Sequence record: PQ657772.1
Reading direction: 5' to 3' (one strand)
Length of the DNA: 64,000 nt
The notes below the pieces were generated by a model. The model was not told where the DNA came from. It did no database searches and was given only the letters and a program-made list of their open reading frames with translations. Below, piece by piece: positions 15,369 through 63,081 of the stretch. The translations under genes and the position numbers were made by a program. The stretch's first letter is position 1; every line of letters begins with the position of its first letter.

Positions 15369-15376
15369 AGAGTACC

Positions 15377-15562: not shown

Positions 15563-15570
15563 ATATTACC

Positions 15571-15753: not shown

Positions 15754-15763
15754 AGTATTCTCT

Positions 15764-16158: not shown

Positions 16159-16169
16159 ATAGTACTCTT

Positions 16170-16355: not shown

Positions 16356-16356
16356 A

Positions 16357-16847: not shown

Positions 16848-16864
16848 GGGTTTTCTTTAGGAGG

Positions 16865-16896
16865 TAAATATGATATAATGAATAAAGGAGGGAAAT
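16865..16896 (+). promoter_or_regulatory. TAAATA-N3-TATAAT promoter plus RBS of propeller gene 1
   Basis: TAAATAtgaTATAATGAATAAAGGAGG. Confidence 0.7.
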
Positions 16897-18045
16897 ATGT
16901 TACCTTTTGTTAGAATGTTTGATTATGGGAATGAAGCACCTACCAACTCTGGGCGTTTTAAAATATATTCCAGTGATTCTATGTATCTTCATGATACTTA
17001 TACTGACAAGTTGTATGCATCTTCTGCGACGAATTGGGGTACTGGTACAGGTGTAGCATCGAGTAAATTTATTCTTTGTGCGGAGAATGTTAAACGAGTT
17101 CTATTGGAAGATAACAGTAGTGATTGTCAATTGTATGAAGAGAAAGGTACTGGAAAAGTTTTTATCACTGGTAACACGAAGGCATTCACTGGTGTAACTG
17201 ATAGAAAAACTTTGTGGACGGACTGTACTACGTGGATAACATCAAGTGGTATTAATGTTTCTGATATAAAATACATGAGTAGTTTTTATGATATGAAGGT
17301 GAATTTGATAACAAACGATGGTACATTGTATTGTTGTGGAGCTAACAATATATCGAACATATCATCATTTGGTGATGGCACAAACATTAATTCTTTTAAC
17401 ACATTCAAAAGAGTAGATACTATAACTTCGGTTAAAAAGGCAGTTGGTAACATTTATTTGCGAGAAGATAATACTTTATGGGGTTGTGGTTTTAACTATT
17501 ACTACCAGTTGGGCACGGGTAATCAAACTTCTATTACTGGGGTGACGATGATTTCTTCGGATGTTATAGATTTTAATGTAAGTTATCAGAGTACATTTTT
17601 TATCAAATCGGATAATAATTTGTACGCTTGTGGTAAACAGTTCGGTGCACAATATGGGAACGAATTTGGTACAGGTGGTACTTCCTCTTCTACTGATATA
17701 CAATATAAAACTCCCACATTATTGAGTGCAGGTGTTTATAGTTTATATACTTGTGTTGGTAACATGGCATCACATATAGTTAAAGGTGATGAAGTACTTT
17801 ATGCATCTGGAAGCAACTCGTCTGGTCAATTAGGTGTTGGTAATAATAATAATCAGTACTCCTATACTCCTTCATATACTTCGTTTAATACCTCTTGTAA
17901 TTTGGTACGCACCCCATCTGGTTCACTTATACTTACTGATACTGGAAAATTATATTATTGTGGCCTTGCAATAGTAGTAATGGGTGGTATTTCTGGACAG
18001 AACGTTCTTAATTATACAGAAGTCGATATGTCATTTTTGCAGTAA
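16897..18045 (+). CDS. RCC1/BLIP-II-like beta-propeller protein 1/13
   Basis: MLPFVRMFDYGN tag; LWGCGFNYYYQLGTG and LYASGSNSSGQLGVG repeats. Confidence 0.85.
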   Translation: MLPFVRMFDYGNEAPTNSGRFKIYSSDSMYLHDTYTDKLYASSATNWGTGTGVASSKFILCAENVKRVLLEDNSSDCQLYEEKGTGKVFITGNTKAFTGVTDRKTLWTDCTTWITSSGINVSDIKYMSSFYDMKVNLITNDGTLYCCGANNISNISSFGDGTNINSFNTFKRVDTITSVKKAVGNIYLREDNTLWGCGFNYYYQLGTGNQTSITGVTMISSDVIDFNVSYQSTFFIKSDNNLYACGKQFGAQYGNEFGTGGTSSSTDIQYKTPTLLSAGVYSLYTCVGNMASHIVKGDEVLYASGSNSSGQLGVGNNNNQYSYTPSYTSFNTSCNLVRTPSGSLILTDTGKLYYCGLAIVVMGGISGQNVLNYTEVDMSFLQ

Positions 18046-18053
18046 ATTAATAT

Positions 18054-18112
18054 GCCAGTACTTGATACTGGCTTTTTTGATTAAATATAGTATAATGAAT
18101 AAAGGAGGAAAT
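18054..18112 (+). repeat. terminator-promoter-RBS junction cassette
   Basis: GCCAGTA-CTTGA-TACTGGC + T-tract + TAAATATAGTATAATGAATAAAGGAGG. Confidence 0.85.
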
Positions 18113-19222
18113 ATGTTACCTTTTGTAAGAATGGTTAAGTACGGGAATATTGCACCAGTACCGAAAAAAATAAAGAAAGTTATAGCAGGATATGATAATT
18201 TATATGTACTATATGGTGATGGTTCGCTATATGGTTGTGGAATCAATAACTATCAACAGTTAAATATTAATGGAACTGCTACACAAAATAATTGGGTACT
18301 AATTACCAATGGTGTTAGTAATGCATGGGCTGGTGGATACAATATTTTATATTTGAAAGAAGATAAATTTATAATGCACGGAACTAATGTCTCATTAGGT
18401 TTAGGAAATACTACAATTCCATTAGGTGGAGTAGATGTAACTTCTTCATTCCCAGATATCTCTAATATTAAAATGATATCCATTGGTTTTGATTCAATGC
18501 ACTATGTTAGTGCTGATGGTACAACTGTATATGGAAGAGGTATGAACACAAATGGTTCTGTTGGTTCAGGTAGTACTTACTCACAGAGTACTTTCACTTC
18601 AGTACTGAATAATGGAACTAATCAGGTTATTGATATATTTGGTAACGTTAATAATACAGTGCTTCTAACATCGAATGGTGAGCTTCGAGCATGTGGGACA
18701 AGTGCTTATGGTTCTATAGGAAATGAAACTGGTAAGTGGACATCGTTTGGTTTAAAATTATCTGGCACTAAAATAATGGGTGGTAATGGGTATAGTACGC
18801 TTGCATATACAAATTCGGGAATGTACCACTCAGGGTGGCAGTTAAATGGGGAACTAGGAAATGGTTTAGATACTAACGTACAGGTATATCCATTTCAATT
18901 TAACTCTAAAACGATAGATAGCAAGATAGATAAAATTGCCAAATCATCATCTGGGTCATATGTTAACATGTACTCAACAACAGAAGGAAAGATATATACG
19001 ACAGGTTCGTTTGGTAAAAACGGGTCAACTACTGCATTGAATTTGTTCACCAATACATTAACACTTATAAATTACAATCCAGATACCGCCTCGTTGTATA
19101 CGTGCACAAACTTCAGTGTTGTGTATGATGGTAATGAAACTATTGCTGTAAGTGGTAGTCCTACATATGTACCAGGGGGCGTTGCCGCTAATAGATGGAC
19201 TACAATTCCATTACCCAAGTAA
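18113..19222 (+). CDS. RCC1-like beta-propeller protein 2/13
   Basis: start moved to MLPF; LYGCGINNYQQL and SGWQLNGELGNG repeats. Confidence 0.85.
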   Translation: MLPFVRMVKYGNIAPVPKKIKKVIAGYDNLYVLYGDGSLYGCGINNYQQLNINGTATQNNWVLITNGVSNAWAGGYNILYLKEDKFIMHGTNVSLGLGNTTIPLGGVDVTSSFPDISNIKMISIGFDSMHYVSADGTTVYGRGMNTNGSVGSGSTYSQSTFTSVLNNGTNQVIDIFGNVNNTVLLTSNGELRACGTSAYGSIGNETGKWTSFGLKLSGTKIMGGNGYSTLAYTNSGMYHSGWQLNGELGNGLDTNVQVYPFQFNSKTIDSKIDKIAKSSSGSYVNMYSTTEGKIYTTGSFGKNGSTTALNLFTNTLTLINYNPDTASLYTCTNFSVVYDGNETIAVSGSPTYVPGGVAANRWTTIPLPK

Positions 19223-19228
19223 TACTAT

Positions 19229-19293
19229 GCCAGTACTTGAGTACTGGCTTTTCTTTTTGATTAAATATAGTATAATGAATAAAGGAGGGAAAT
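19229..19293 (+). repeat. terminator-promoter-RBS junction cassette
   Basis: GCCAGTACT-TG-AGTACTGGC + T-tract + TAAATA-N3-TATAAT. Confidence 0.85.
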
Positions 19294-20415
19294 ATGTTAC
19301 CTTTTGTTAGAATGTTTGATTATGGAAATGAAGTACCTGATCCTAGTTCGGGATTTCGAATAATAAGTACAGGAGACGCATTACTATTAATTACTAAGAG
19401 TGGTGATTTGTGGGTGCGTGGTTATAACCGTTATGGCAAGTTAGGTATAGGTAATAACACCACTACCTATGTACTTGATTGGACGAAGGTTAGAAGTGAT
19501 GTGAAGTTTGCGTGTGGTAGTGGATTGGTAACAGTTATCTTTACTAAGGATAATCGTATATTGTACTGTGGTGACAAATGGTTTGAAACGGGTGGTGTTG
19601 GTAGTGCACAGATTTTCACATGGACAGATGTTACGCATCAATTTGGGGTAGTAGATTTGAGTACTGTAAGGGATATGAAAATATCTTATTACGCGATTGG
19701 GTTAGTTACTACTAATAATCAATTATACGCTAAGGGATTTGATAATAACCTATCATTTGGTGGGGTTACTAATAAGGCGACTGCTGTGTTTATTGCGAAT
19801 AATGTACAAGAGTTGTATACGAGTTTAGTTAGTACTATCTACGTTGATACAAGTGGTATATTACATCGTTGTGGCATGAGTGATAACGGTTCGTTGGGTA
19901 ATAATGGTAGTTTAACTTCGTATCTAAGTTATTCACAGCCTGGTATGACGATTAAGGACATTGGAATGATGACTACGAACACTGGGTTATTATATACTGA
20001 TTCTAGTGCACGAACGAGATATTTTATTGCTGGACAGAACTTGAATAAACAGATGGGTAATGCGGCGGCTGCGAGTGCCATTACGAGTACTTACACAGAG
20101 CTTTCTGGTAGTGTTGATAAGTTTTCTTCTTTATGGGAGAATGATGGGATATTGATGACATTTGCTGTGGGTAAGAACACTAATCAGTTATTTTATGCTG
20201 GGACGAATACTTTTCATGCGAGTGGTGGTGAATCTTCATATGCGGATACATATGAGTTAGTTCCGATGGTGTTTAATGACATACAGGAAGTGTTATGTGC
20301 ACAGCGTTTATCGGTGGTACATGATTCTACGAAGTGGTATTACTGTGGTGATGCTAATTCAATGTATGGTTTACCGGACGTAAGTACTTTTACTGAGTTA
20401 CCGTTGCCCTTTTAA
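19294..20415 (+). CDS. RCC1-like beta-propeller protein 3/13
   Basis: tag; LWVRGYNRYGKLGIG. Confidence 0.85.
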   Translation: MLPFVRMFDYGNEVPDPSSGFRIISTGDALLLITKSGDLWVRGYNRYGKLGIGNNTTTYVLDWTKVRSDVKFACGSGLVTVIFTKDNRILYCGDKWFETGGVGSAQIFTWTDVTHQFGVVDLSTVRDMKISYYAIGLVTTNNQLYAKGFDNNLSFGGVTNKATAVFIANNVQELYTSLVSTIYVDTSGILHRCGMSDNGSLGNNGSLTSYLSYSQPGMTIKDIGMMTTNTGLLYTDSSARTRYFIAGQNLNKQMGNAAAASAITSTYTELSGSVDKFSSLWENDGILMTFAVGKNTNQLFYAGTNTFHASGGESSYADTYELVPMVFNDIQEVLCAQRLSVVHDSTKWYYCGDANSMYGLPDVSTFTELPLPF

Positions 20416-20421
20416 TAATAG

Positions 20422-20488
20422 GTCAGTACTGAAATATGTACTGGTATTTTTTGTAAATACTGTATGATTTAATTACGGAGATTTTATT
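20422..20488 (+). repeat. variant terminator-promoter junction
   Basis: CAGTAC..GTACTG hairpin; TAAATActgTATGAT; GGAG RBS. Confidence 0.75.
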
Positions 20489-21670
20489 ATGTTACCTTTT
20501 GTTAGAATGTTTGATTATGGGAACGTCGTTGAGCCACCTGTGGGTACACGTTATACCTGTAGTGACTATAGTGCGACTTATAGTTTAATAAAGGATGGTG
20601 TGTTATATGTATCTGGGATGAATAACTATTATCAGTTAGGTAATAACACTAACGTAACACGTTACAACGAGTGGTTAAAAGTTCCAGAGACTGATAGTGT
20701 TAAGTTTTGTAGTACTGGTTATAGTCAGACAATGTATCTGACTAACAATGGTAGGATAATGATAGCAGGTGAAGATCCTACTTCCAGTGCGACGGCGGTA
20801 AGTGTAAAGGTTTGGACGGATATAACTTCTAGATTTCGTGCAGTTGATACTAAAAAGATTGTTTATATTTCAATAGAACGTTATGGTGTAATGATGATCA
20901 TGGAAGATGGTTCAGTATGGGCGTGTGGTGTTGATAATACTGGTTGGAGTGGACAAGGGAGTAAGACTGTTGGTTTCTTTACTTTCAGACAAATATACAC
21001 CGGAAGTGCAGGAAGTGCAGTTGCTTGTACTGCTGGTACTGGCACTTCGAGGATTCTATTAGTTGATGGTACAATATTGTCCTCTGGTACTAATACATAT
21101 CATCAATGTAATGCTAGTACTGATCTGGCTGTTCTAACATACACTGAATCATTCCCTGGGGTTGATCCTTCATTGATATATCAAGTCAAGATGTGTAATA
21201 ACAACTGTATTATATTCTTGAGTGATAAGAGATATTATGGTACTGGTTGGGGGAGTTTTGGTGCTTTGGGTGATGGTGATATTTCGGGTTCGAATAATAA
21301 ATTCTATGCTGGTACATTGTCAGTTGCTCCTAAAAACATGCGTGCTTATATGTCGTATCTATGTAGTTCTGCTGGGGATTCTAGTATGTACATAGGCGAT
21401 GATAATTTCATATACACCTGCGGTTATCGTGGGAGGAACTTAATAAATGCCACTACAGATATTGGGACGTTCACGAAATGCATTCAAAGTGCACAAGGAT
21501 ACAAGAATGGACTTATATATAGTGGGAATTATTGTGCTGTAGTTTTTGATCCAGATTTGGGTTCAGGAATGACATATGCGGTTTCATCACCAAAAGTGAA
21601 TGCACCAGCACCACAGGCGAGTGTTCCAACATTGGGTATGAGTTCGTTACAAGCTATTATTTTACCATAA
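20489..21670 (+). CDS. RCC1-like beta-propeller protein 4/13
   Basis: tag; LYVSGMNNYYQLGN. Confidence 0.85.
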   Translation: MLPFVRMFDYGNVVEPPVGTRYTCSDYSATYSLIKDGVLYVSGMNNYYQLGNNTNVTRYNEWLKVPETDSVKFCSTGYSQTMYLTNNGRIMIAGEDPTSSATAVSVKVWTDITSRFRAVDTKKIVYISIERYGVMMIMEDGSVWACGVDNTGWSGQGSKTVGFFTFRQIYTGSAGSAVACTAGTGTSRILLVDGTILSSGTNTYHQCNASTDLAVLTYTESFPGVDPSLIYQVKMCNNNCIIFLSDKRYYGTGWGSFGALGDGDISGSNNKFYAGTLSVAPKNMRAYMSYLCSSAGDSSMYIGDDNFIYTCGYRGRNLINATTDIGTFTKCIQSAQGYKNGLIYSGNYCAVVFDPDLGSGMTYAVSSPKVNAPAPQASVPTLGMSSLQAIILP

Positions 21671-21675
21671 CATTA

Positions 21676-21745
21676 TACCAGTACTGAAATACGTACTGGT
21701 ATTTTTTTGTAAATACATTATAATTATTATATGGAGATTTTAGTT
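21676..21745 (+). repeat. variant terminator-promoter junction
   Basis: TACCAGTAC..GTACTGGTA; TAAATAcatTATAAT. Confidence 0.75.
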
Positions 21746-22876
21746 ATGTTACCTTTTGTTAGAATGTTTGATTATGGGAATACAGTGGCTGCTCCCACTG
21801 GTATAAAGGATTTCCAAGCAAATGGAAGCCACTGTATGGCACTAACATATAGTGGTGAGATGTGGGCTTATGGTACAAGTACAAGTGGATCAATGGGAAC
21901 CGGATTCACGGTGGGTGCTGCTGATAAGGGTTGGTACAAGTCTAACATTAGTAATGTTAAATCATTCAGTTCTAATATGCAGACTAGCACAGTGGCTTTG
22001 ACAAATGATGATAGAGTGCTAGTTTGTGGCTCAACTAGATTTGACAAATTCAGTACTCCAGATATTGCATCATCTAACCTTGATTGGTTGGATGTTACTG
22101 ATCATATTCCACAGGAAGTTATTGATGCTGGGATGAAGCAAGTTATTAACCACGCATATTATGTTGCCATTTTTACTGAAAACAATCTATTATATAGTGT
22201 GGCATTATCTTTGGGTAATACTAGTACTATAATAGATAGAACATGGCGAAGAAATACATTTGGTGATATACAAGTTGAACGTGTTGTTTCGTTGACACAA
22301 ACCCCAAGTGGTCCTTTGTGTATAGTTCAAGATGCAGACGGATACCAGTATGGTATTGGATATAATGGTAATAAGATTATTGATAATACTTCCACTAATT
22401 CATATTCTGTATATACCAAAATGGGTACACTTCCTTACAATGAATTTGCCATATCGAATAGCGGGAAATTCAGTTCAGCGGTATTATCAGACGGGAGAAG
22501 TGTTTATAGTGGTACATTTCCAAAGTCATTCAATAATAGTTTTGGTTCATTTTTGAAAGTTGGTGCGGTATCAGATACTGTGTTTGGTTTAGATGCAAAA
22601 AATATGCGTGGTCAATATGGTCAAAATCAATTACCAATTGCGGCGGCTGATAACAATGCAAGTAATGGCGTTGTTAACCTTCGTAATGTTCCAGCGGGAA
22701 CACAAACGAAAGACATTCGATTTATATGCGGAAATGATGTAAAGAACGTTTATATCATATACACAAATGAAGACGGCATTAGCTCATTTTATGGATTGGG
22801 ACCAAACTTTGATCAAAATTCCTCAGCATATGCACAATTCGTCAAAGTGGATTTGCCAGGGGCATTATTAAATTAA
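21746..22876 (+). CDS. RCC1-like beta-propeller protein 5/13
   Basis: start moved to MLPF; MWAYGTSTSGSMGTG. Confidence 0.8.
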   Translation: MLPFVRMFDYGNTVAAPTGIKDFQANGSHCMALTYSGEMWAYGTSTSGSMGTGFTVGAADKGWYKSNISNVKSFSSNMQTSTVALTNDDRVLVCGSTRFDKFSTPDIASSNLDWLDVTDHIPQEVIDAGMKQVINHAYYVAIFTENNLLYSVALSLGNTSTIIDRTWRRNTFGDIQVERVVSLTQTPSGPLCIVQDADGYQYGIGYNGNKIIDNTSTNSYSVYTKMGTLPYNEFAISNSGKFSSAVLSDGRSVYSGTFPKSFNNSFGSFLKVGAVSDTVFGLDAKNMRGQYGQNQLPIAAADNNASNGVVNLRNVPAGTQTKDIRFICGNDVKNVYIIYTNEDGISSFYGLGPNFDQNSSAYAQFVKVDLPGALLN

Positions 22877-22886
22877 GGAGAGAAAT

Positions 22887-23996
22887 ATGTTACCTTTTGT
22901 TAGATTGTTTGATTATGGGAATATCACACCTGGTCCTAAAAATATAATTAAAGTTGGTGCTTCTACACAGGGTCAATTCTTATTGACAGATTCACATGAT
23001 TTATATTACATAGGTAGAAATCAAGGTGGTGAATCTGGAAATGGAAATACCAACACAGTATCCTCATGGATATTAGTAAGTACAGATGTTTCTAATTTTT
23101 TCGTGGGTGATCGTACACTTGTTATTATTAAAAATGATAATACGATATGGTCATCAGGTCAAACGTACTGGTTCACATCTTCCACAACTACTTCTTACAG
23201 TACTGTATTAGTTGATAGAACCAGTTGGTTTACCAATGCCATACCAGTAAGTGAAATTGCTGATATAGTATGTTCGTATGGTTTAATATTTGTACTTAGC
23301 ACTAGTTCAGTACTCTATGGTGCAGGGGCTAATGGATATCGTGGTGCTTTAGGTATTGGTTCATCATCAATTTACACATTAACTCAATGTGCTACTAATG
23401 TGCGTAAAGTAATGACGAATGCAAATGACAGTATGTATATTACATTAGATAATAAGTTATATAGTTCTGGGTGGAATGACCGTGGATTACATGGCACAGG
23501 GAACAGAACACAAGTTAACATTTGGGGACTGCGTAGTTCTGGTGTAATAGATGCAGCTATTGGTGGACATACACTCAATTACTATAATGGTACATCATAT
23601 TTCACATGTGGTACAACTCCAAACTTTCTTAGTTCAGATTCAACTACATTCAAAGCAGTTCCTGTAAGTACTTTACCTAATAATTCACCTTTGTTTATGA
23701 CAAATTCAGAGGCAACAAGCACGGCTACGCAAATTATATTAACTAGTGCATATCAGAAAGGTATTGGGGGAAACCGTGGTTTGGGATTAAACAATTCTCA
23801 AACGGGTGCTATCTATAGTGCTGCTAATTTACAATTACCTGTAGAAGTTAGTGAGATTAGTGATGTTGCTTTTAGTGACGGATTAACATCATTATTAACC
23901 AAAGACGGGAATGTATATAGTACTGGATCGTATTACGCCATTCCAGGTGCAAGTGCAGATGTTGCAGTCTTTACTAAAATTGATTTACCAAAATAA
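22887..23996 (+). CDS. RCC1-like beta-propeller protein 6/13
   Basis: tag; LYGAGANGYRGALGIG; no own promoter (coupled to gene 5). Confidence 0.85.
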   Translation: MLPFVRLFDYGNITPGPKNIIKVGASTQGQFLLTDSHDLYYIGRNQGGESGNGNTNTVSSWILVSTDVSNFFVGDRTLVIIKNDNTIWSSGQTYWFTSSTTTSYSTVLVDRTSWFTNAIPVSEIADIVCSYGLIFVLSTSSVLYGAGANGYRGALGIGSSSIYTLTQCATNVRKVMTNANDSMYITLDNKLYSSGWNDRGLHGTGNRTQVNIWGLRSSGVIDAAIGGHTLNYYNGTSYFTCGTTPNFLSSDSTTFKAVPVSTLPNNSPLFMTNSEATSTATQIILTSAYQKGIGGNRGLGLNNSQTGAIYSAANLQLPVEVSEISDVAFSDGLTSLLTKDGNVYSTGSYYAIPGASADVAVFTKIDLPK

Positions 23997-24002
23997 CATA
24001 AT

Positions 24003-24066
24003 GCCAGTAATCTGTACTGGCTTTTCTTTTTTGTTAAATATAGTATAATGAATAAAGGAGGAATAT
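24003..24066 (+). repeat. terminator-promoter-RBS junction cassette
   Basis: GCCAGTA..TACTGGC; TAAATA-N3-TATAAT. Confidence 0.85.
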
Positions 24067-25246
24067 ATGTTACCTTTTGTTAGATTATTTGATTATGGGA
24101 ATATTGCCCCTGTCAAAGATACTGTTGTTAAAATTAATAGTGATGAAAATTCAATAAGCGTATTATACAGTGATGGGTCATTATATATGCGTGGACGGAA
24201 ACCAATCAGCAAAAATGGGAGTTACTGGTTCATCTTTTTTGGATAGATGGGTTTTATGTCCTTATAGTGTTGATGATTTCTGGAGTTCTCTATATTGTAC
24301 TATAATTAGAACAAAACAAGGGGAATTGTACTATAGTGGGACTAACTCAGTTTTTGGTATATCATCTTCGGTTTCAACATGGACTCGTTGTGAATCATAT
24401 TTTGGATCTATTTCTCCGAGTTCAATAAAAGATATAAAAATAACATCATCAACCGGAACTAACAATTCCATGTTAATACTAACAAGTGACGGGCAGTTAT
24501 ATGGTATAGGCATGAATGGTGCAAGTGAATTGGGTACAGCAACTGCACCAATTACATCTCCACTCTTAATTGACACTAGTGTATCTGCAATTGCATCTAG
24601 TGAAATGAGCAGAAACTTTCACTATATAAAAGATGGTATATATTATCGTTGTGGTGAGAATACTTTTTATCAATTAGGAACCGGTGATAATAAGCCTATT
24701 ACTAGTTTTACTGCATTGAATCTTGGTAGTTCTCATGTAATTGCAGTACAAGCTACACGATGGGTAACACGTTTGATTGTTCAAAGTAGTACATCTGCTT
24801 TGTCTTTAATGGCGGCTGGTTGGAACACACAGTTGACTATAGGTGGTTCTGAAAATACTGGTATAATAAGGTCATCATTTACTACCAATCCCTATACCGA
24901 TATAACAGCAAATTCATTCGATAAACTTTCACCAGTATCCTATGTTAATGCAATAAAATCCAGTACTAACATTATTAATACGAATGGTAAGGGATATAAT
25001 TCTAATGGTGCTGGTTTAGGCCGCAACGCAGTCTCTGGGAATTATGGTTCAATATTACCAATAGAATTCTTTGATGATAGTGTTGACTTATCACATGTTG
25101 AGTGGTTTGGTACGATTGGTAATGGTTCAGTATCGGTAGTTAGTATAGGTGAGGATTTATACTGGACTGGAAACCCTGGGTATTTTACTGAACAAGGTGA
25201 GACTGGATATATATATAAATTCAAAAAGTGCGTTCCTTTTAGATAA
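24067..25246 (+). pseudogene. RCC1-like beta-propeller 7/13, frameshifted (+1 A at 24199-24201)
   Basis: MLPF frame stops at 24246; removing one A gives LYMRGRNQSAKMG and joins ORF 24170-25246 (392 aa); could be a sequencing error. Confidence 0.8.
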
Positions 25247-25250
25247 ACAC

Positions 25251-25316
25251 AATGCCAGTACTCAAGTACTGGCATTCTTTTTGATTAAATATAGTATAAT
25301 GAATAAAGGAGGAAAT
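25251..25316 (+). repeat. terminator-promoter-RBS junction cassette
   Basis: AATGCCAGTACT-CA-AGTACTGGCATT; TAAATA-N3-TATAAT. Confidence 0.85.
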
Positions 25317-26471
25317 ATGTTACCTTTTGTTAGAATGTTTGATTATGGGAATGAAGCACCTGTACCAGTTGGTATAAAGATGGTAAAAGTTTTACAGAAT
25401 AATGTGTTTATTTTATTAGAAGACGGAAGGTTATATGGCAGAGGGCATAATTTTTACTATCAATTAGGTACTGGTAGTAGTTCTCCTACTATAGTTGAAG
25501 AGTGGGTTTTATGTTTAACTGATGTAAAGGAATTTTGGACTACTGGTGATACACAAGGAATATTAGTACGTAAAAATGATGGCACATGGTGGAGTACTGG
25601 TACTCAAATCTATCGTGGTGTTAATACTACTTATCGTGTATGGACAGAAATACTTGGTATTTTTAATAATGTGAATGACACATATAGTAAAATAGTTATA
25701 GGAAACGGCGTTACATTATTATTAACAATAGATAATAAATTATATAAGATGGGTGACAATAACAACGGTGAAGTTTTTACTGGGGCTGTTGGACAAAGAG
25801 TATCAGTACTGACATTGACCCCAGAAGTTGATGTTAAAGATATTGGTGTAACCGCGAATAATGCTTCATTTGTATTATACAATGATGGAACATTAAAGTA
25901 CAGTGGGAATAAATCTAGTATTGGTTCGACTGGTACAACTACCACAACTACCACATTGACTACTGTTACTACTGGAGTATTACAGATAAATTCGGAAAAT
26001 GCATATAGTGCTAATTACGTATTAAAGAGTGATGGGCTATATGTATTCGGTTCACAAATAGATGGACAGTTGGGTGATGGCACTGATGGCACTATTAACA
26101 GTCTTAGAACAATCACAAAGATACCAGCTTCTAGTATTCCTAGTACTGCGATTGATTACATAGGTGGTTCTAATTATGAAGCACACGTTAGAGCAGGTGG
26201 TATATGGTATTTCGCTGGGCGTGGAAACGCTTCTGGAGATGGAATAACGAACTCTAATGTTATTAAAACATGGCGTGCATGTACTAATATAACTGAACCA
26301 GTTCCATATGATAAAATGACACATGGTTATATGATAACATTCATGTTAAAAAACGGTGAATTATATGGTTCAGGGAATGGTAGTAGAACTGCTGGTATGG
26401 GTACAATTCCGTATGAAGAAGAAAATGCCGGAAATACAGGATTATTTAAAAAAATAGTTACACCGAGTTAA
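25317..26471 (+). CDS. RCC1-like beta-propeller protein 8/13
   Basis: start moved to MLPF; LYGRGHNFYYQLGTG and LYVFGSQIDGQLGDG. Confidence 0.85.
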   Translation: MLPFVRMFDYGNEAPVPVGIKMVKVLQNNVFILLEDGRLYGRGHNFYYQLGTGSSSPTIVEEWVLCLTDVKEFWTTGDTQGILVRKNDGTWWSTGTQIYRGVNTTYRVWTEILGIFNNVNDTYSKIVIGNGVTLLLTIDNKLYKMGDNNNGEVFTGAVGQRVSVLTLTPEVDVKDIGVTANNASFVLYNDGTLKYSGNKSSIGSTGTTTTTTTLTTVTTGVLQINSENAYSANYVLKSDGLYVFGSQIDGQLGDGTDGTINSLRTITKIPASSIPSTAIDYIGGSNYEAHVRAGGIWYFAGRGNASGDGITNSNVIKTWRACTNITEPVPYDKMTHGYMITFMLKNGELYGSGNGSRTAGMGTIPYEEENAGNTGLFKKIVTPS

Positions 26472-26477
26472 AATTAA

Positions 26478-26547
26478 AATGCCAGTACTTGAGTACTGGC
26501 ATTTCTTTTTTTGATTAAATATAGTATAATGAATAAAGGAGGAAAAT
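26478..26547 (+). repeat. terminator-promoter-RBS junction cassette
   Basis: same architecture as the other junctions. Confidence 0.85.
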
Positions 26548-27738
26548 ATGTTACCTTTTGTTAGATTGTTTGATTATGGGAATATCACACCTGAACCTCT
26601 TCTAATTAAGAAAATAATACCAACTGATACTGATGTGGTTGTACTTTATACTGACGGTCAACTATACGCACGAGGAAATAATAGTTATGGGAAGTTCGGT
26701 CGCGGAAATAATAATGCAGTAAGGTCGTGGACATTAATTAGAGAAAATGTCAAAGATTGCTGGATGACACAAGGAACTTTGTTAGTTCAAGATAAGGACT
26801 TAAATTATTTTTATTGTGGATATGGTGGTCATATTGGTTTAGAAACTAGTACTACATCATTTTTAAGTTATAACCAATATATTGAAAATTTGTACACACA
26901 AAGTTCAGGTACTTCAATTAAACAGATGTATGCAGGTACTACGTGGTTTACTTTCTTAATGGATAATAATACAATATGGAGTACTGGTTGGAGTGGGGCT
27001 AGACAATTCGCTGATGGTACTGGTAGTACTCAACAAATAACAGATGGATCATTTGTAAAAGCTGTCACGCCTAATGTTGATATTGCACGAATACAGTCAA
27101 CAAATAGCTGTGTAATGTTTTATGATACACAAAATAATTTATATATTGGTGGTAGTACATCAGGTATAAGTACTACTGATACATGGACTCCATACAATCA
27201 ATATACTTTATATCAGCCAAGTACAACATATACAAAAACATTACAATATGTTGTATGTACAATTGGTGCAGTCAGTGCTTTAGTGGAGAATCCAAGTACA
27301 GGAGCACGTCAGTTCCTAGTGGGTGGGAACGCCAATAATGGGGCATGGGGTAATAACACTACGTCTAGTACAGCACGAGCAGTATTAGGAAATAATAGTA
27401 CAACCTTACCACCCGGTACTTTGTATTCAATTCATACTGGATACCCAGCACAATCTAGTATACTAGTTACGAGTTCTGGTGTATATGCAACAGGTTTAAA
27501 TGCGAGTAGTTATGCTGGTTCATTGGGTGTTGGTTCTAATGTTACCATTGGTAAATTTACTGCATGTCCATTGCCGTCAGAAATAACATATTCTATGTAT
27601 GATAAAATAAAAATATATCGAGGGTCGTTACGTACTTTCCTAACTGCTGATATGAAAAATATATATTCAACCGGAACTTATGATGATGGTGGTCCTAGTA
27701 CAAATAGATATGTACTTGACACTCCAAGACAACTATAA
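26548..27738 (+). CDS. RCC1-like beta-propeller protein 9/13
   Basis: tag; LYARGNNSYGKFGRG. Confidence 0.85.
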   Translation: MLPFVRLFDYGNITPEPLLIKKIIPTDTDVVVLYTDGQLYARGNNSYGKFGRGNNNAVRSWTLIRENVKDCWMTQGTLLVQDKDLNYFYCGYGGHIGLETSTTSFLSYNQYIENLYTQSSGTSIKQMYAGTTWFTFLMDNNTIWSTGWSGARQFADGTGSTQQITDGSFVKAVTPNVDIARIQSTNSCVMFYDTQNNLYIGGSTSGISTTDTWTPYNQYTLYQPSTTYTKTLQYVVCTIGAVSALVENPSTGARQFLVGGNANNGAWGNNTTSSTARAVLGNNSTTLPPGTLYSIHTGYPAQSSILVTSSGVYATGLNASSYAGSLGVGSNVTIGKFTACPLPSEITYSMYDKIKIYRGSLRTFLTADMKNIYSTGTYDDGGPSTNRYVLDTPRQL

Positions 27739-27745
27739 CAATAAT

Positions 27746-27812
27746 GCCAGTACTTTGTACTGGCTTTTATTTTTTTTTGATTAAATATAGTATAATGAAT
27801 AAAGGAGGAAAT
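27746..27812 (+). repeat. terminator-promoter-RBS junction cassette
   Basis: same architecture as the other junctions. Confidence 0.85.
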
Positions 27813-29000
27813 ATGTTACCTTTTGCAAGAATGGTTAAGTACGGGAATAAAGTCATTCCATATGTTCCCAATTTTACTAAATTAGTCACCCCAGCAGTTG
27901 GTTATTCATTTACATGCACAATGCTGCTTGATGTAAATGGATCAGTGTGGGCTATGGGTCTTCAGAATGCAGGAATTTTTGGGTTAGGTAATACTACACA
28001 GGTTACTGAATGGACAAAAATATATAACAATGTTAAAGATTTTTGGTGCAGCACGGGGAATGGTTTTTGTCTAATACGAACAAATGATGATAGATTCTTT
28101 TATAGTGGTTTAGATAAATGGCTAGGTAACAATACAACAAATACTGTAACAACATTCACTGAATGTACGAGTTATTTTACACAATTTGGTATTTCAAAAA
28201 TCAAAGAGATATATGTAGGTCTTGATTATGCTTTGATTTTAGGTACTGATAATAGTTTATATTTGTTAGGTGATAATAAAAATTCAAAGTTTGGTTTAAA
28301 CACTGCATCATATTTTAATAAATTTACATTTTTAGTCGATAATGTTAAAAAATTCTGTTCATCCATCACACCATCTAACTGGATTATTAAACTAGATAAT
28401 ACAATATGGCGTACTGGGACAACATCTCATGGAACGTTGGGAAATGGAGTTCAAAACACATATATATTTCCTTGGGTTCAATATAAGGGCACACCTGTTA
28501 CCGAAGCTATAGACGTTTTTTGTAGTGCGAGTTATATTGGTATTATAACTAAAGGTACACCAGAATCATGTCCTATGTATACACTAGGCTATCAAGCTGA
28601 TGGTCAGTTGGGTAATAATACTACAGCAGGGGGTTATAAATTAACGCCAACATTATCGAAAACCGTTCCAGATGATAGTGAATTCATTCGAATTGAAAAC
28701 ATCTCATCCCGTGGTCTGGTATATTATAGCTCTGGTAAAATTTATAGTACTGGTTATAATAACAATGGTCAGTTGGCAAATAATACTAAAATCAATTCTG
28801 GTTCATTTGTTGAAGCAATTTTACCTAATGGTGTTAACTTTAAGAAAAGTGAATCACTTGTAGCTGGGAACGATGCAACGTTGTATATGTACATTAATAA
28901 TAAATTATACTACGCGGGGAAATCTCCTGATAATATTTCAGCAAGTAGTTCGTCTGTCATGAAAGAATTCCCACTTCCAACAATTAATGCCAGTACTTGA
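27813..29000 (+). CDS. RCC1-like beta-propeller protein 10/13
   Basis: start moved to MLPF; IYSTGYNNNGQLAN; stop codon lies in the terminator loop. Confidence 0.85.
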   Translation: MLPFARMVKYGNKVIPYVPNFTKLVTPAVGYSFTCTMLLDVNGSVWAMGLQNAGIFGLGNTTQVTEWTKIYNNVKDFWCSTGNGFCLIRTNDDRFFYSGLDKWLGNNTTNTVTTFTECTSYFTQFGISKIKEIYVGLDYALILGTDNSLYLLGDNKNSKFGLNTASYFNKFTFLVDNVKKFCSSITPSNWIIKLDNTIWRTGTTSHGTLGNGVQNTYIFPWVQYKGTPVTEAIDVFCSASYIGIITKGTPESCPMYTLGYQADGQLGNNTTAGGYKLTPTLSKTVPDDSEFIRIENISSRGLVYYSSGKIYSTGYNNNGQLANNTKINSGSFVEAILPNGVNFKKSESLVAGNDATLYMYINNKLYYAGKSPDNISASSSSVMKEFPLPTINAST

Positions 29001-29051
29001 TACTGGCTTTTCTTTTTGATTAAATATAGTATAATGAATAAAGGAGGAAAT
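28989..29051 (+). repeat. terminator-promoter-RBS junction cassette
   Basis: same architecture as the other junctions. Confidence 0.85.
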
Positions 29052-30401
29052 ATGTTACCTTTTGCGAGAATGGTTAAGTACGGAAATAAAGTTGAAGCCT
29101 CTACTGTGAAGAAATTCGACTCCATTGGTATGGGTCATGATAGGAATGGTGGTGGTAATTGGTTTGGTGCAATATTAGCATCAAATGGAAATTTATATGG
29201 TATTGGTCAAACAAAATATGTTTCTTTTGGTATAACACCAACCAATGGTACAGGAATTGAATTAGTACGAAAAAATGTAAACAATTTTTGGCTACTATCA
29301 AATGGAATAATAGTTAAAGATAATGATGGTTCATATCATTTTTGTGGTGTATATGCAAATGGAATATTCACACATTCAAGTATAACTACAGCACCTTTTA
29401 TAACAAATGGTTTTATAAATGTATCTTCTTATTTTTCTAACGTAGGTGAAGTTGTGGAAATGGTATTCTGTGGTGGATATGATAAAGGTCCAGCAACATC
29501 ATTAACCCCAGCATACACTTCAAAATATAGTTGTATTTTGGCAGCATTGAACACTAATGGTGAAATCTGGTATATGGGTTTGTCGATTCAAGGTTTAATA
29601 AACAACTCCACATCAGATTACTACTTTACTTCTTTTACTAAAGATAATCAATTGACACAAAAAGCAGTTTCATTAAGATGCACAATAGACATGTCACATA
29701 ATAATGTGTATTTTGTTGGTAATAGACCTGTACTTTATGCCAAATTAGAAGATGGTACAATCGTAGGTAAGGGATATAATATACGATATGGTATACAAAA
29801 ACCAGCTAGTACAAACCAAGTGATTAAAACGTGGACTACAGTGGCTGTAATCGGAACAGCAGATGATTTTGATGCAACAAACGAAGGCATGATGTACTGC
29901 TCAAATTCACAACTATATCGCTGTGGTAATGGTGGTGGTTTTTCTTTCTGGAATGGTACAAGTAGTGTGTATTATATGGGCTACAACGTTGGTATGTTTC
30001 TAATCGGTGCGAATGACGTCAACCGTGTAGCGGGTGGTTTTAACGTCCTAACTACAGGGATTAAAGATGATGTAGGTATAAATGTACCAACTTCATCCAG
30101 TACCAAAATACGAATGAACTACTGTGGAACTGTAATTTTTGAACCCGGAACAACATCAATATATAAAGCACATGGTGTTTATAGTGATTACTATGCTAGT
30201 CCTTCATGGCAAGCGGGTGCAGTCGCTTCATTTACATATGAAGACATTGGTATTAAAATCAAAGATGCTATGTATGTTGGTGGTACTCTTGGGTTTACAA
30301 CATATGGATTATTAGTGGTTAGTACTGAAGGTAAGGTATATTGGAGAGGTGTGTACAACGGTGTAACATATCAAACACTCACAGAAATACATTTGTTGTA
30401 A
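29052..30401 (+). CDS. RCC1-like beta-propeller protein 11/13 (most divergent, 449 aa)
   Basis: start moved to MLPF; SNGNLYGIG and TEGKVYWRG blades. Confidence 0.8.
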   Translation: MLPFARMVKYGNKVEASTVKKFDSIGMGHDRNGGGNWFGAILASNGNLYGIGQTKYVSFGITPTNGTGIELVRKNVNNFWLLSNGIIVKDNDGSYHFCGVYANGIFTHSSITTAPFITNGFINVSSYFSNVGEVVEMVFCGGYDKGPATSLTPAYTSKYSCILAALNTNGEIWYMGLSIQGLINNSTSDYYFTSFTKDNQLTQKAVSLRCTIDMSHNNVYFVGNRPVLYAKLEDGTIVGKGYNIRYGIQKPASTNQVIKTWTTVAVIGTADDFDATNEGMMYCSNSQLYRCGNGGGFSFWNGTSSVYYMGYNVGMFLIGANDVNRVAGGFNVLTTGIKDDVGINVPTSSSTKIRMNYCGTVIFEPGTTSIYKAHGVYSDYYASPSWQAGAVASFTYEDIGIKIKDAMYVGGTLGFTTYGLLVVSTEGKVYWRGVYNGVTYQTLTEIHLL

Positions 30402-30407
30402 TATAGT

Positions 30408-30471
30408 GCCAGTACAGAGTACTGGCTTTTCTTTTTGATTAAATATAGTATAAAGAATAAAGGAGGGAATT
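30408..30471 (+). repeat. terminator-promoter-RBS junction cassette
   Basis: GCCAGTAC..GTACTGGC; TAAATAtagTATAAA. Confidence 0.8.
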
Positions 30472-31605
30472 ATGTTACCTTTTGCAAGAATGGTTAAGTA
30501 CGGGAATATAAAAGTAAAGAGTACTATCCAAAAAGTTATCCTTGGTGGTGGTCAATGTGTGGTAACATTACTCAGTGATGGTAGAGTGTATGGACGTGGT
30601 TACAACACTACACATGGGTTAGGTACTGGTACAACAACATTCGTAAGTGATTGGGTATTAATGGGAGATAATATTGTTGATATCCATTCAAATGGTGTTA
30701 CTGGAACATTCCTTATTACCAAAGAAAATAGAATATTGTATTCTGGTTTTGCGACACCAATCAATGGCACAACATCACATTATACACGTTTCACTGATTT
30801 AACATCAACTGTATTTGCTGCGGTGGATGTTAGTAATATTAAAACAATTACGGGAAATGGTAATGTTACAATGGTTCTTTTGAATGATGGTTCACTTTAT
30901 GGGAGTGGTGCAAATACAGGGGTTATAGGTAATGGTAGTAACGTTGCATTATCAACACAAACATATGTGACTAATGATGTGCGTGATGTGAAAACATATC
31001 CATCAATGAACACTATAACAAAAAATAATAATCAAATATTGGCTAGTGGTATTTTATACCAAGGCGTGAACGGTACAAATTCATCAATAAACACGTCTTC
31101 ATATACATTACTGTACACATTACCGAGTTCTGATTGTTTTCAATTTGCATTTGATACATATACATTTGGATATGTTGACCCTAGTACTAACACTTCTTAT
31201 ATAAGAGGTATACCAATAAATGGTTCATTAGGTAATGGCGTTACTAATAATACAGCAGTTACAACATGGGTTACTAAAGTTTGGAATACACCAATTGATA
31301 GTTCTATACCTAATAAATCATATACAACTAACCATGTCTCCTTGTTCAATGATGGAAACTTATGGACAACTGGTGCATCTAGTGTAGGTTATTCCAATGG
31401 TACAAATAGCACAACAGCTAATACATGGACCAGTTCATCTAATTTACCATTCAACACTAATAACATAACAGACTATGCTTTTGGTGGTAGTATTACTGTA
31501 GTGGTAATCGACTACAGGACTATGTACATACTAGCTAACAACGCCATTGCTGGTACTGCTACGACAACTTATAAATTTGAGCCATATAATTCTCCACCAG
31601 TTTAA
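30472..31605 (+). CDS. RCC1-like beta-propeller protein 12/13
   Basis: tag; VYGRGYNTTHGLGTG. Confidence 0.85.
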   Translation: MLPFARMVKYGNIKVKSTIQKVILGGGQCVVTLLSDGRVYGRGYNTTHGLGTGTTTFVSDWVLMGDNIVDIHSNGVTGTFLITKENRILYSGFATPINGTTSHYTRFTDLTSTVFAAVDVSNIKTITGNGNVTMVLLNDGSLYGSGANTGVIGNGSNVALSTQTYVTNDVRDVKTYPSMNTITKNNNQILASGILYQGVNGTNSSINTSSYTLLYTLPSSDCFQFAFDTYTFGYVDPSTNTSYIRGIPINGSLGNGVTNNTAVTTWVTKVWNTPIDSSIPNKSYTTNHVSLFNDGNLWTTGASSVGYSNGTNSTTANTWTSSSNLPFNTNNITDYAFGGSITVVVIDYRTMYILANNAIAGTATTTYKFEPYNSPPV

Positions 31606-31612
31606 TATAATT

Positions 31613-31638
31613 CCAGTACTATGTACTGGCTTTTCTTT
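31613..31638. terminator. terminator between convergent genes
   Basis: CCAGTAC-TAT-GTACTGG + T-tract. Confidence 0.7.
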
Positions 31639-32288
31639 TACATATTATATAATGTGAATGCAGTCACTTTACCAGTTGTTGTTAGTTCATTATAAAGATA
31701 CTCCAAGATTCTCGCACACTCTAAGTATATCTCGATATCATCATGAATAAGTGAGTACTGAAATAGCTGTTCTTCAGATAATTTGTATTGACTTCCTTTT
31801 AATGAATTGAGAATATCTTTCACATCATCAAGTACTGGGTAAAGTACGAAATCTTCATCATATTTTGAAGCAATAAATTCAAATCCACCACCATCAGTAC
31901 TAGATATACCAATCAGTACTTTATCAATCAAGTTAATGTTTATATAACGGTTGTGATTTGGGTGAATTGAAATCTCAAACATAAGAGTACTGTTACAATC
32001 AACATCAATATACAAATATACATCATTGAATTTATAAGTTAAGCAACCGTACTCAAGAAAATCAGAGCAAATAATTGATGAGTTTTTTCTCGTCTCTGCG
32101 TAATGCATCTTGATATTCTTTTCACGCATAAGTAATTCGAACTTTGCACTAAACTTGCCACCAGCAAGATAGTTAGTATTAGGACGTTTGTAACTTGCAA
32201 CTGGTCGGTGGGATGATGTAAAGTATTTTTTTGTGAATCGTTTATGTTTAGTGAAATATTCTTGATAGAACTTACTTCTTTTATTCAT
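31638..32288 (-). CDS. hypothetical protein, dispersed EExF(Q/M)xS(L/I/T)(I/V) family
   Basis: LSEEQLFQYSLIHDD; GAGG RBS; antisense insertion in the propeller array. Confidence 0.8.
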   Translation of the reverse strand: MNKRSKFYQEYFTKHKRFTKKYFTSSHRPVASYKRPNTNYLAGGKFSAKFELLMREKNIKMHYAETRKNSSIICSDFLEYGCLTYKFNDVYLYIDVDCNSTLMFEISIHPNHNRYININLIDKVLIGISSTDGGGFEFIASKYDEDFVLYPVLDDVKDILNSLKGSQYKLSEEQLFQYSLIHDDIEIYLECARILEYLYNELTTTGKVTAFTLYNM

Positions 32289-32365
32289 GAGTACCTCAAT
32301 TAAATCGCTGTAAAATTGTACATTATAAAATGATTAAATAAAGTATAACACAAGGAGATTTTATC

Positions 32366-33490
32366 ATGTTACCTTTCGTATTGTTATTTGATTATGGGAA
32401 CGAAAAACAAGAAAGTTCTTATGATGTTAGTGTATATGGAAACAATAACTACATTTTAAATAAACAAACTGGAAACCTTTTTGCATCCGGTGCTGCGGCA
32501 TTCATGGGTGATAACACAGTTAAGTATTATATTACCCAAATAGAATCAAATGTTCATAGCTGTGAGATAGGTTTCCTATCATCATGGATAATTAAGAAGG
32601 ACAAAACTGTTTTCATTTTAGGAAACAAAAGCAGTATTGGATTAACTGATTCGACAACATCATGGTTCGAAATTACAAACTTATTTTCTGCTGTTCCTGA
32701 AATATGGGACAACCTATTTGAATGTAAAGTTCAATTGGGATATAACTGCATACGTGTTATGACACCACTAGGATCAATATATGCGATTGGTACAAACACT
32801 TATGGTGCATTGGGTACTGGTACTACATCCTCATCCACTTCGTTCGTTAAAAGTGGTGCTGTGGATGCTGTACGCATGGAATCAACAGAACGTTCAGTGT
32901 TCTATCAAAACAGTTCTGGACAATGGTTTGGATGTGGTGATAACACATATGGTATACTAGGTCTAGGAACTACCGCTAGTCGTGTAAACTCATACACCGC
33001 ACCAGTATGGACTAATGCAGAAGCTGTTAGCTTCTCTAACCGTGGAATCATATACAGCCTCAATGGTACTCTATACTCATGTGGTGACAAAGTTAATGGT
33101 CAGCTAGGGGATGGATATACACAAAGCATAGACGCAGCCAGGAGCACACCATACACCATAGGAACCGCATTCCAAATTGGTAAGGCAATAACATCAGCTA
33201 CACAAGCATCAGCCAACGTATTCATTGGTAAAGATAATAAGTTCTATGGTACTGGTAGTATTGCTGCTGGTATAAATGGTAGTACTAGTGCTGCATTAAG
33301 TAAAGTTACTGCGTTATCAGCAGCACTACCACCTGACATTACATACAATGATATTATAACATTCAATACAGGGACCGTAACTTTTATTCAAGCAAAAGGA
33401 CAACTATATTATGTTGGTAGAAGAACTTACATAGATAATAGTTCAGACGTTACCACACAGTTCAGTGTAATTGGTGGCTTAGATAATTAA
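32366..33490 (+). CDS. RCC1-like beta-propeller protein 13/13
   Basis: MLPFVLLFDYGN; WFGCGDNTYGILGLG and LYSCGDKVNGQLGDG. Confidence 0.85.
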   Translation: MLPFVLLFDYGNEKQESSYDVSVYGNNNYILNKQTGNLFASGAAAFMGDNTVKYYITQIESNVHSCEIGFLSSWIIKKDKTVFILGNKSSIGLTDSTTSWFEITNLFSAVPEIWDNLFECKVQLGYNCIRVMTPLGSIYAIGTNTYGALGTGTTSSSTSFVKSGAVDAVRMESTERSVFYQNSSGQWFGCGDNTYGILGLGTTASRVNSYTAPVWTNAEAVSFSNRGIIYSLNGTLYSCGDKVNGQLGDGYTQSIDAARSTPYTIGTAFQIGKAITSATQASANVFIGKDNKFYGTGSIAAGINGSTSAALSKVTALSAALPPDITYNDIITFNTGTVTFIQAKGQLYYVGRRTYIDNSSDVTTQFSVIGGLDN

Positions 33491-33494: not shown

Positions 33495-33525
33495 AATCCA
33501 GTACTATTATAGTACTGGATTTTTT
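33495..33525. terminator. bidirectional terminator
   Basis: AATCCAGTACT-ATTAT-AGTACTGGATT between convergent blocks. Confidence 0.8.
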
Positions 33526-33898: not shown

Positions 33899-33899
33899 T

Positions 33900-34262: not shown

Positions 34263-34263
34263 G

Positions 34264-63044: not shown

Positions 63045-63059
63045 TAAATACGTTATAAT
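63045..63059 (+). promoter_or_regulatory. TAAATA-N3-TATAAT promoter
   Basis: same motif as upstream of the propeller genes. Confidence 0.65.
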
Positions 63060-63081
63060 AATTATACCAATGGAGGGATGA

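Follow-up and report, generated by a model that had tools for sequence, protein, structure and literature searches.

A shuffled array of tagged RCC1-like propeller genes in the jumbo phage EC.P1: candidate minor virion proteins sharing an N-terminal peptide

The window analyzed here comprises nucleotides 1–64,000 of Escherichia phage EC.P1 (PQ657772.1; 356 kb in total, from pig-farm waste water), matching that record at 99.9% identity with the same coordinates; its relatives are Asteriusvirus jumbo phages including PBECO4, 121Q, and phAPEC6. Between positions 16897 and 33490, its plus strand carries an array of thirteen genes that start with the same 12-residue peptide (the tag) and continue into divergent bodies of the RCC1 type, all annotated as “hypothetical protein” in the EC.P1 record. 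We favor, at a probability of about 0.5, the explanation that the array is a shuffled collection of genes for minor virion proteins, whose binder domains are incorporated via the N-terminal peptide and docked outside the particle. Each protein would comprise one ligand-binding domain, an RCC1-type seven-bladed propeller, behind the tag and a linker of about eight residues. The tag would serve as a virion-incorporation label throughout the RaK2-like jumbo phages, whichever domain comes after it, most likely by fitting the binders to an acceptor site that they share on the particle exterior, and the bodies would act as adhesin-like accessory binders. The genes would carry their own late-type promoter, ribosome-binding site (RBS), and terminator, the gene 5/6 junction excepted, and a repeat of about 105 bp would provide the substrate for homologous recombination, through which whole genes are added, deleted, replaced, or reordered; closely related isolates would carry different gene sets because of recombination at this repeat. 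For EC.P1 itself the evidence comes from its sequence, and the virion mass spectrometry is that of the relatives phAPEC6, CBB, and GAP32 and of the Vequintavirinae phage W70.

Thirteen genes with a common start

A six-frame search of the window for open reading frames (ORFs), with EC.P1 scanned to 70 kb, recovers thirteen long plus-strand ORFs with the start MLPF[VA][RL][ML][FV][DK]YGN, all within the array (Table 1); the sole other MLPF that this search finds in the window belongs to a chance ORF of 23 amino acids (aa). This confirms the thirteen genes with a shared 12-aa start reported in a preliminary description of the same DNA. The gene length given there, 369–449 aa, is correct for the twelve intact genes and fails for gene 7, in which a single frameshift divides the coding sequence between two reading frames. 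The two frames, compared one by one and not joined, are annotated as two coding sequences in EC.P1 and Ecwhy_1, and the same split is present in WPEC3 and PBECO4. The RCC1 profile continues to match the longer frame, whose low divergence between EC.P1 and PBECO4 (97% identity) is compatible with a retained pseudogene and with an expressed gene alike. The richness in Ser, Thr, Gly, Asn, and Tyr noted in that description is also found (T 11.0, G 10.7, S 9.6, N 8.3, and Y 6.1%). Pairwise identity between bodies is 19–29% (median 25%), against a median of 83% between tags, and the proteins have isoelectric points (pI) of 5.1–8.6 and net charges of -7 to +5, with no excess of basic residues.

RCC1-like propeller fold

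The blade motif G-x-N-x-x-G-x-L-G, previously said to be kept in the bodies, occurs in its strict form only 0–2 times per protein, the blades being far more degenerate; for this reason, membership of the RCC1 superfamily rests on profiles and fold. Pfam RCC1, RCC1_2, or WD40_RLD models match 11 of the 12 intact genes, as does a profile made of cellular homologues alone (11/12), and the only profile match of gene 11 is to PHROG 4219 (E 5e-18). Compared with the Protein Data Bank, the array profile retrieves HERC1, UVR8, and RCC1 (E 1e-55 to 1e-40). Structural models were generated with AlphaFold2 for genes 8 and 11 of the twelve intact genes. The gene 8 model has a predicted local distance difference test score (pLDDT) of 88.9 and 28 strands (7 x 4) that start at residue 20, and Foldseek aligns it to the RCC1-like domains (RLDs) of UVR8, RPGR, and HERC2 with template-modelling (TM) scores of 0.73–0.77. 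The gene 11 model is weaker (pLDDT 67, TM 0.55–0.65 to RCC1-like propellers). A segment of roughly 100 residues in gene 11 (about 296–398), missing from the other paralogues, is modelled with very low confidence and may be a module inserted on the propeller.

The array proteins have in common with UVR8, the HERC1/2 RLDs, RPGR, RCC1, and BLIP-II the seven-bladed propeller fold and the repeat family, whereas identity to these proteins is 14–21% and none of them has the N-terminal tag. The resemblance to RCC1 is confined to fold and superfamily, and the functional name of RCC1 should not be transferred. The analogies to BLIP-II and to Legionella RCC1 proteins, offered earlier as a guide to function, likewise contribute nothing past the shared fold.

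The N-terminal tag

In both models, residues 3–10 of the tag form a short low-confidence helix (pLDDT 64 in gene 8) followed by a linker, so that the tag and the linker of about eight residues are modelled outside the propeller fold. A role of the tag as the closing strand of the propeller was considered and ruled out, all 28 strands being placed after residue 19 in the models. Cellular RCC1 proteins lack the tag and begin with a signal peptide or straight with the blades. A search of 1.8 billion representatives returned 139,441 proteins of the RCC1 superfamily, with giant multi-repeat proteins as top matches; in the best 150 of these matches the tag region is unaligned, no best-scoring stretch beginning before profile position 7.

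Among phages, every array gene is tagged in phAPEC6, 121Q, Ecwhy_1, fEgEco12, WPEC3, PBECO4, Erwinia phage Hallingskeid, and GAP32. The tag also heads proteins that are not of the RCC1 type: a 245-aa protein of PHROG 4474 in several Asteriusviruses, GAP32_002, and tagged proteins of Hallingskeid (Kelch propeller; PHROG 6011, “virion structural protein”). CBB has no RCC1 gene, and there the tag heads CBB_548–554 and CBB_247, the bodies being Kelch propellers (CBB_550, 552, and 554), Laminin_G_3-type domains (CBB_548 and 551), and others including CBB_247. A strict DNA pattern of the tag matched 121Q alone in IMG/VR, and a degenerate pattern found 39 tagged ORFs on 8 contigs of 109–378 kb, about half of them non-RCC1; the complete contig of 121Q has 11 pattern matches, every one of them within two stretches of tagged array-type ORFs only. 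As far as these genomes show, the tag is modular and is common to unrelated folds over several genera. The proposal of a constant tag joined to variable bodies is supported by these three features: the tag lies outside the modelled fold, is missing from cellular RCC1 proteins, and occurs on unrelated folds in relatives.

By comparison of its coding DNA, the tag is constrained at the protein level. In Hallingskeid, where the array genes are only 10–13 nt apart, identity of the upstream DNA is 0.28 (background) and that of the tag DNA is 0.85, and synonymous codon variants are seen at P3, F4, Y10, G11, and N12 of the tag. Two subtypes can be distinguished, VRMFD-like and ARMVK-like, and the same body type bears different subtypes across phages. 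By genome, phAPEC6 has the ARMVK or GRMVK type and EC.P1 mostly VRMFD, and in both phAPEC6 and 121Q the tags are almost exclusively of one subtype; this pattern is consistent with gene conversion or with co-evolution with a partner. After the tag, position 13 is E in four of the thirteen window genes and otherwise I, K, V, or T, and none is conserved at positions 13–15.

Association with the virion proteomes of relatives

The gene family is already known. Eleven RCC1-like proteins have been described in phAPEC6, eight of them in its virion proteome, and DNA condensation was proposed by the authors (PMC7247149); multiple copies have been reported in 121Q and PBECO4, with GAP32_001 as a structural protein (PMC5259590). 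These “DNA condensation proteins” of phAPEC6, 121Q, PBECO4, and GAP32 belong to the same gene family and locus as the EC.P1 array, but the papers describe neither the shared peptide nor the other tagged folds nor the cassette structure. The shared N-terminus is absent from the published accounts found for this family, a text search of the literature for MLPF and phage gave nothing relevant, and the tag and its modularity appear to be undescribed.

Virion mass spectrometry of phAPEC6 detects 8 of the 11 annotated tagged proteins, compared with 54 of 540 others (62/551 overall; Fisher p = 2e-6), and that of CBB, where the tagged bodies are of other folds, detects 6/8 tagged proteins, compared with 49/546 others (55/554 overall; Fisher p = 2e-5). 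The tagged GAP32_001 is also a virion protein verified by mass spectrometry. The statistical link between the tag and the virion proteomes of relatives is strong, which favors the virion role suggested earlier. Four further tagged ORFs at the phAPEC6 locus (3–1145, 2434–3543, 6063–7253, and 7325–8059) are un- or mis-annotated in the record and are therefore beyond scoring in the published virion proteome.

Parallel systems occur outside this group. W70 and LTH01, phages of the Vequintavirinae, have three to four RCC1 genes in tandem that share another start peptide, MLEM[LM]NL[GS], and W70_237–239, which carry the MLEM[LM]NL tag, are verified RCC1 virion proteins with 141–233 spectra. In Seunavirus, PVP-SE1 gp40 and its 4MG homologue start with M[YF]PIP, combine RCC1 with a Big_2 immunoglobulin (Ig)-like domain, and are encoded last in the tail-fibre cluster; the PHROG of gp40 is named “tail protein”, and gp40 is listed with verified virion proteins, paired with rV5 gp28, a “putative tail fibre”. 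In one BFVD match, an RCC1 propeller is joined to the N-domain of a T7 tail fibre. The features of gp40 and this fusion hint at an external location. Literature matches that pair RCC1 with tail fibre were all spurious (Roscoff culture strain numbers and Rhodobacter locus tags).

Intergenic cassettes and transcription

In 11 of the 12 junctions, the genes are separated by a cassette comprising a G+C-rich hairpin (stem CCAGTAC/GTACTGG), a T-run, a TAAATA-NN-GTATAAT word, and a strong RBS. Terminator, late-type promoter, RBS, and tag make up a repeat unit of roughly 105 bp, and repeats of about this length are annotated at array gene boundaries in the UE-S1 record. Within the EC.P1 array, conservation at the DNA level extends from about -45 to +36 of the gene starts. 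Terminator-like hairpins number 27, compared with 7.5 expected, and 12 of the 13 array genes have one on their 3′ side; the stem word CCAGTA..TACTGG has 11 copies in the window, all within the array (0.01 expected), and the promoter-like word has 9–12 copies in the array (0–0.8 expected). Sites of the sigma-70 type are not enriched (79 vs 88 expected), and the array word has no -35 element at the proper spacing. The genes thus resemble mostly stand-alone transcription units, as had been described. The 10-nt gene 5/6 junction is the sole one lacking both hairpin and promoter-like word, and gene 5 is probably co-transcribed with gene 6 because no terminator follows it.

The array promoter motif was previously reported to precede a probable structural gene starting at 63082, and it is present there with one mismatch. 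This gene matches PHROG 10468 (“virion structural protein”) and is orthologous to phAPEC6 gp077, which is detected in virions with 10 peptides. The phAPEC6 genes for gp077, gp231c, and gp244 have the same two-part upstream arrangement as the array, and ATAAATA-type words lie upstream of structural genes of that phage, including those for the major capsid, scaffold, and baseplate, at a similar distance from the start. Late expression of the array is plausible because its word resembles these structural-gene upstream words, because the phage encodes a late sigma factor, and because the word is also present before the gene at 63082.

The palindromic octamer CAGTACTG occurs in 57 copies in the 64 kb (about 1 expected), most densely at 10097–11742, where 12 copies lie in 1.7 kb of gene-poor DNA. 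The array terminator stems are split versions of CAGTACTG, and in phAPEC6 the octamer or its half adjoins the upstream elements of late genes.

The array cassettes are similar to the promoter early stem-loop (PeSL) cassettes of T4-type phages, units of stem-loop terminator and promoter that flank non-core genes and whose recombination leads to insertions, deletions, and replacements (PMC2839356; PMC4122927). They differ in that the array promoter is not sigma-70-like and is closer to the late-gene upstream words of the phage, and in that the array repeat reaches 36 nt into the coding region, fusing a protein tag to the next body.

Shuffling among relatives and selection

Clustering the bodies at ≥60% identity gives 31 types in nine phages. 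Body types are designated by letters, with the split gene 7 in brackets, and the cassette order is A B C D E F (7) G H I J K L in EC.P1, A B D O F (7) G H I M K L in Ecwhy_1, and A B C D O F G M H P B V W K L in fEgEco12; phAPEC6 has four body types in common with EC.P1, in a different order. When fEgEco12 is compared with EC.P1, the flanks are 96% covered at 99% identity and the array is 39% covered. Between fEgEco12 and Ecwhy_1, two of the most divergent proteins belong to the array family. The array is therefore far from invariant among relatives, the cassette maps differing even within a species.

The homology blocks start between -93 and 0 relative to a gene start and stop between +31 and +49, where the tag ends; as in PeSL units, their boundaries lie in the cassette, except for blocks continuous with the conserved flanks on either side. 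At the level of aligned genomes, these comparisons show whole-gene exchange bounded by the repeat of about 105 bp.

Nearest known attachment systems and alternative explanations

Peptide-mediated docking is an established attachment route. In the K1E/K1-5/SP6 and the Klebsiella KP32 and KP34 groups of phages, an N-terminal peptide of 7–11 or more residues docks otherwise unrelated virion proteins (PMC6872550), and experimental validation of such docking peptides has been reported (PMC13352976). The array shares with the K1-5, SP6, and KP32 systems a short, group-specific N-terminal peptide that is the only part common to a set of virion proteins; here it has 12 residues (MLPF..YGN in RaK2-like phages; MLEM.. 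is the Vequintavirinae form). The systems differ in that the array-type bodies are single propellers or lectin-like domains of 220–450 aa, up to 17 per genome, whereas the known docking peptides carry trimeric beta-helix spikes; attachment by the same means is proposed here by analogy. External docking is favored because this route has precedent, because relatives are fused to Ig-like or tail-fibre domains or encoded in tail-fibre clusters, because lectin-like and Kelch bodies suit surface ligands, and because the proteins are large, rigid, and not basic. Three elements of this explanation are inferred: a causal role of the peptide in incorporation, an external position of the proteins, and ligand binding by the bodies. 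In a broader form, which we put forward tentatively and rate somewhat below an even chance, the dodecapeptide would be a universal virion address label of RaK2-like phages, such that any binder gaining it via the 105-bp cassette plugs into one multivalent acceptor, and the MLEM.. label of Vequintavirinae would have evolved independently.

Several observations weigh against the external-binder explanation. The virion data come from relatives and not from EC.P1, mass spectrometry cannot separate inside from outside, and the peptide counts of the phAPEC6 tagged proteins are low (1–5). AlphaFold2 confidence is low across the tag. The known docking-peptide proteins are trimeric spikes or fibres, while the array proteins are single propellers with no predicted oligomerization, and RaK2 fibres are built with larger, CBA120-like N-terminal domains. 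No T4 gp10-like acceptor domain was found in phAPEC6 gp244, 245, 247, 248, 253, and gp077 by Pfam, which is insensitive for this purpose. An identity of the propellers with the “hairy” whiskers was ruled out, as CBB has whiskers yet no RCC1 gene. Finally, the ratio of nonsynonymous to synonymous substitution rates (dN/dS) of orthologous bodies has means of 0.15–0.27, with 0.40 and 0.50 in the two comparisons for gene 3. As judged by these ratios, the array bodies are maintained under purifying selection, and nothing points to overall diversifying selection.

The alternative that survives best, although we consider it unlikely, is that the tag is a capsid-targeting sequence, by which the proteins would enter the prohead via the scaffold core, lie among the packaged DNA, and later be ejected into the cell, their variable faces neutralizing host defence or other host proteins. 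The architecture fits this explanation and external docking equally well. A short conserved N-terminal peptide on very diverse, virion-carried proteins of a hypervariable locus is what the T-even internal proteins display, the conserved N-terminus being the sole shared part in both cases (PMC3012670); homologues of the array proteins are present in virions, an inner body and a prohead protease of the T4 type are known from phAPEC6, the array is distant from tail genes amid many small early-looking genes, and protein-binding folds such as RCC1 and Kelch would suit inhibitors. However, the T4 internal proteins are small, basic, and cleaved after the targeting sequence, whereas the array proteins are rigid 40-kDa propellers of 369–449 aa with acidic-to-neutral charge (pI and net charge as above), and no residue directly after the tag is conserved as a candidate common protease site. 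The Seunavirus relatives, with Ig-like domains and a place within a tail-fibre cluster, also argue against an internal location, and the lectin-like bodies of CBB suggest carbohydrate ligands.

Much less probable is that the constant N-terminus has no function as protein and is part of a DNA repeat, made up of a regulatory cassette and translation-initiation region and homogenized by gene conversion. Such a repeat would agree with the conservation from about -45 to +36 in EC.P1, with tag subtypes whose exchange does not follow that of the bodies and which are to some extent uniform in a given genome, and with recombination blocks that end where the tag ends. It does not account for Hallingskeid, in which the genes are 10–13 nt apart and the tag is kept without conserved upstream DNA, nor for CBB, whose genes are packed with no room for an intergenic cassette. 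In addition, the tag residues are conserved across genera, with synonymous changes, on bodies that are ~25% identical or have other folds, and the tag predicts virion incorporation.

Least probable of all is a role of the RCC1-like proteins in organizing or condensing packaged DNA, perhaps as parts of the inner body, in the manner of eukaryotic RCC1 on chromatin. In its favor, phAPEC6, whose authors made the proposal, shows an inner body and has these proteins associated with its virion, and the idea has been repeated by the W70 authors and its name propagated through many records. Against it, the charge of the proteins is acidic to neutral without an excess of basic residues, their abundance is low, their gene content varies within one species, unlike that of a core packaging component, the same tag and locus in CBB encode Kelch and lectin-like proteins and no RCC1, and the likeness to RCC1 is one of fold or superfamily, with UVR8, HERC, and RPGR domains as best matches. 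The published “DNA condensation” label is unsupported beyond the fold name.

Taken as a whole, the preliminary description is partly supported: its constant tag and variable bodies, its virion role, and its promoter motif at 63082 have support, and the array varies among relatives, whereas external docking, export, and recognition of receptors or host proteins by the propeller faces stay proposals.

Table 1. Array genes, intergenic cassettes, and related features (EC.P1 window coordinates unless another phage is named)
Feature	Position	Strand	Description
Promoter-like word and RBS	16864..16896	+	5′ of gene 1
Gene 1 (type A)	16897..18045	+	382 aa, tagged RCC1-like propeller
Cassette	18054..18112	+	5′ of gene 2: terminator hairpin, T-run, promoter-like word, RBS
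Gene 2 (type B)	18113..19222	+	369 aa, tagged RCC1-like propeller, ARMVK-type tag variant
Cassette	19229..19293	+	5′ of gene 3
Gene 3 (type C)	19294..20415	+	373 aa, tagged RCC1-like propeller
Cassette	20422..20488	+	5′ of gene 4, variant promoter word
Gene 4 (type D)	20489..21670	+	393 aa, tagged RCC1-like propeller
Cassette	21675..21745	+	5′ of gene 5, variant promoter word
Gene 5 (type E)	21746..22876	+	376 aa, tagged RCC1-like propeller, no terminator after
Gene 6 (type F)	22887..23996	+	369 aa, tagged RCC1-like propeller
Cassette	24003..24066	+	5′ of gene 7
Gene 7	24067..25246	+	tagged RCC1-like gene, split into two reading frames by one frameshift
Cassette	25251..25316	+	5′ of gene 8
Gene 8 (type G)	25317..26471	+	384 aa, AlphaFold2 model a 7-bladed propeller from residue 20
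Cassette	26477..26547	+	5′ of gene 9
Gene 9 (type H)	26548..27738	+	396 aa, tagged RCC1-like propeller
Cassette	27746..27812	+	5′ of gene 10
Gene 10 (type I)	27813..29000	+	395 aa, tagged RCC1-like propeller
Cassette	28989..29051	+	5′ of gene 11
Gene 11 (type J)	29052..30401	+	449 aa, most divergent; PHROG 4219 match, no Pfam match
Cassette	30408..30471	+	5′ of gene 12
Gene 12 (type K)	30472..31605	+	377 aa, tagged RCC1-like propeller
Terminator hairpin	31613..31629	+	3′ of gene 12
Promoter-like word and RBS	32335..32365	+	5′ of gene 13
Gene 13 (type L)	32366..33490	+	374 aa, tagged RCC1-like propeller; minus-strand ORF between genes 12 and 13
Terminator hairpin	33495..33521	+	3′ of gene 13, end of array
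Promoter-type word (63045–63059) and gene starting at 63082	63045..64000	+	outside array; gene runs off window
RCC1 array, LTH01	1450–6119		Vequintavirinae
RCC1 array, W70	1645–5143		Vequintavirinae

Neighbouring sequences

Directly upstream of the array, the minus strand holds a second multigene family (11996–16793) of about 21 tandem paralogous ORFs of 59–81 aa, in two sub-families split by a 219-aa ORF (14134–14793); from feature tables, relatives appear to vary in its copy number. Between genes 12 and 13, a 216-aa minus-strand ORF (31638–32288; PHROG 34359, unknown function) is present in EC.P1, Ecwhy_1, fEgEco12, and WPEC3. The 216-aa and 219-aa ORFs were considered as repeats flanking the array and rejected, their similarity being weak (E 8e-4). 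Further upstream, about 2 kb (10014–11995) are without an annotated gene in EC.P1 and contain many short direct and inverted repeats, including a tandem array with an 8-bp period (10791–10942); tRNA and Rfam scans gave no match in this region or elsewhere in the window. Downstream of the array, seven consecutive minus-strand ORFs of similar size (33527–35966; 104–123 aa) show no BLASTP similarity to each other.

Implications for RaK2-like jumbo phages

RaK2-like jumbo phages are gathered as therapeutic candidates, with more than 80% of their genes lacking a known function, and the fold name alone is the usual basis on which their arrays are called “DNA condensation” or “chromosome condensation regulator”. 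A tag serving as a predictor of virion incorporation on four or more body types (RCC1, Kelch, Laminin_G_3-type, and others) would allow new annotation of dozens of genes in each genome, would account for a locus that ranks among the most variable between isolates of the same species, and would direct structural work to a specific interaction between peptide and acceptor. With the regulatory cassette joined to a protein-targeting tag, one recombination event would deliver promoter, RBS, and virion address to a new body. If the broader form of the explanation, with the dodecapeptide as a universal address label, is true, these phages possess a natural plug-and-play display system, in which the gene array is a fast-shuffled library of binders.

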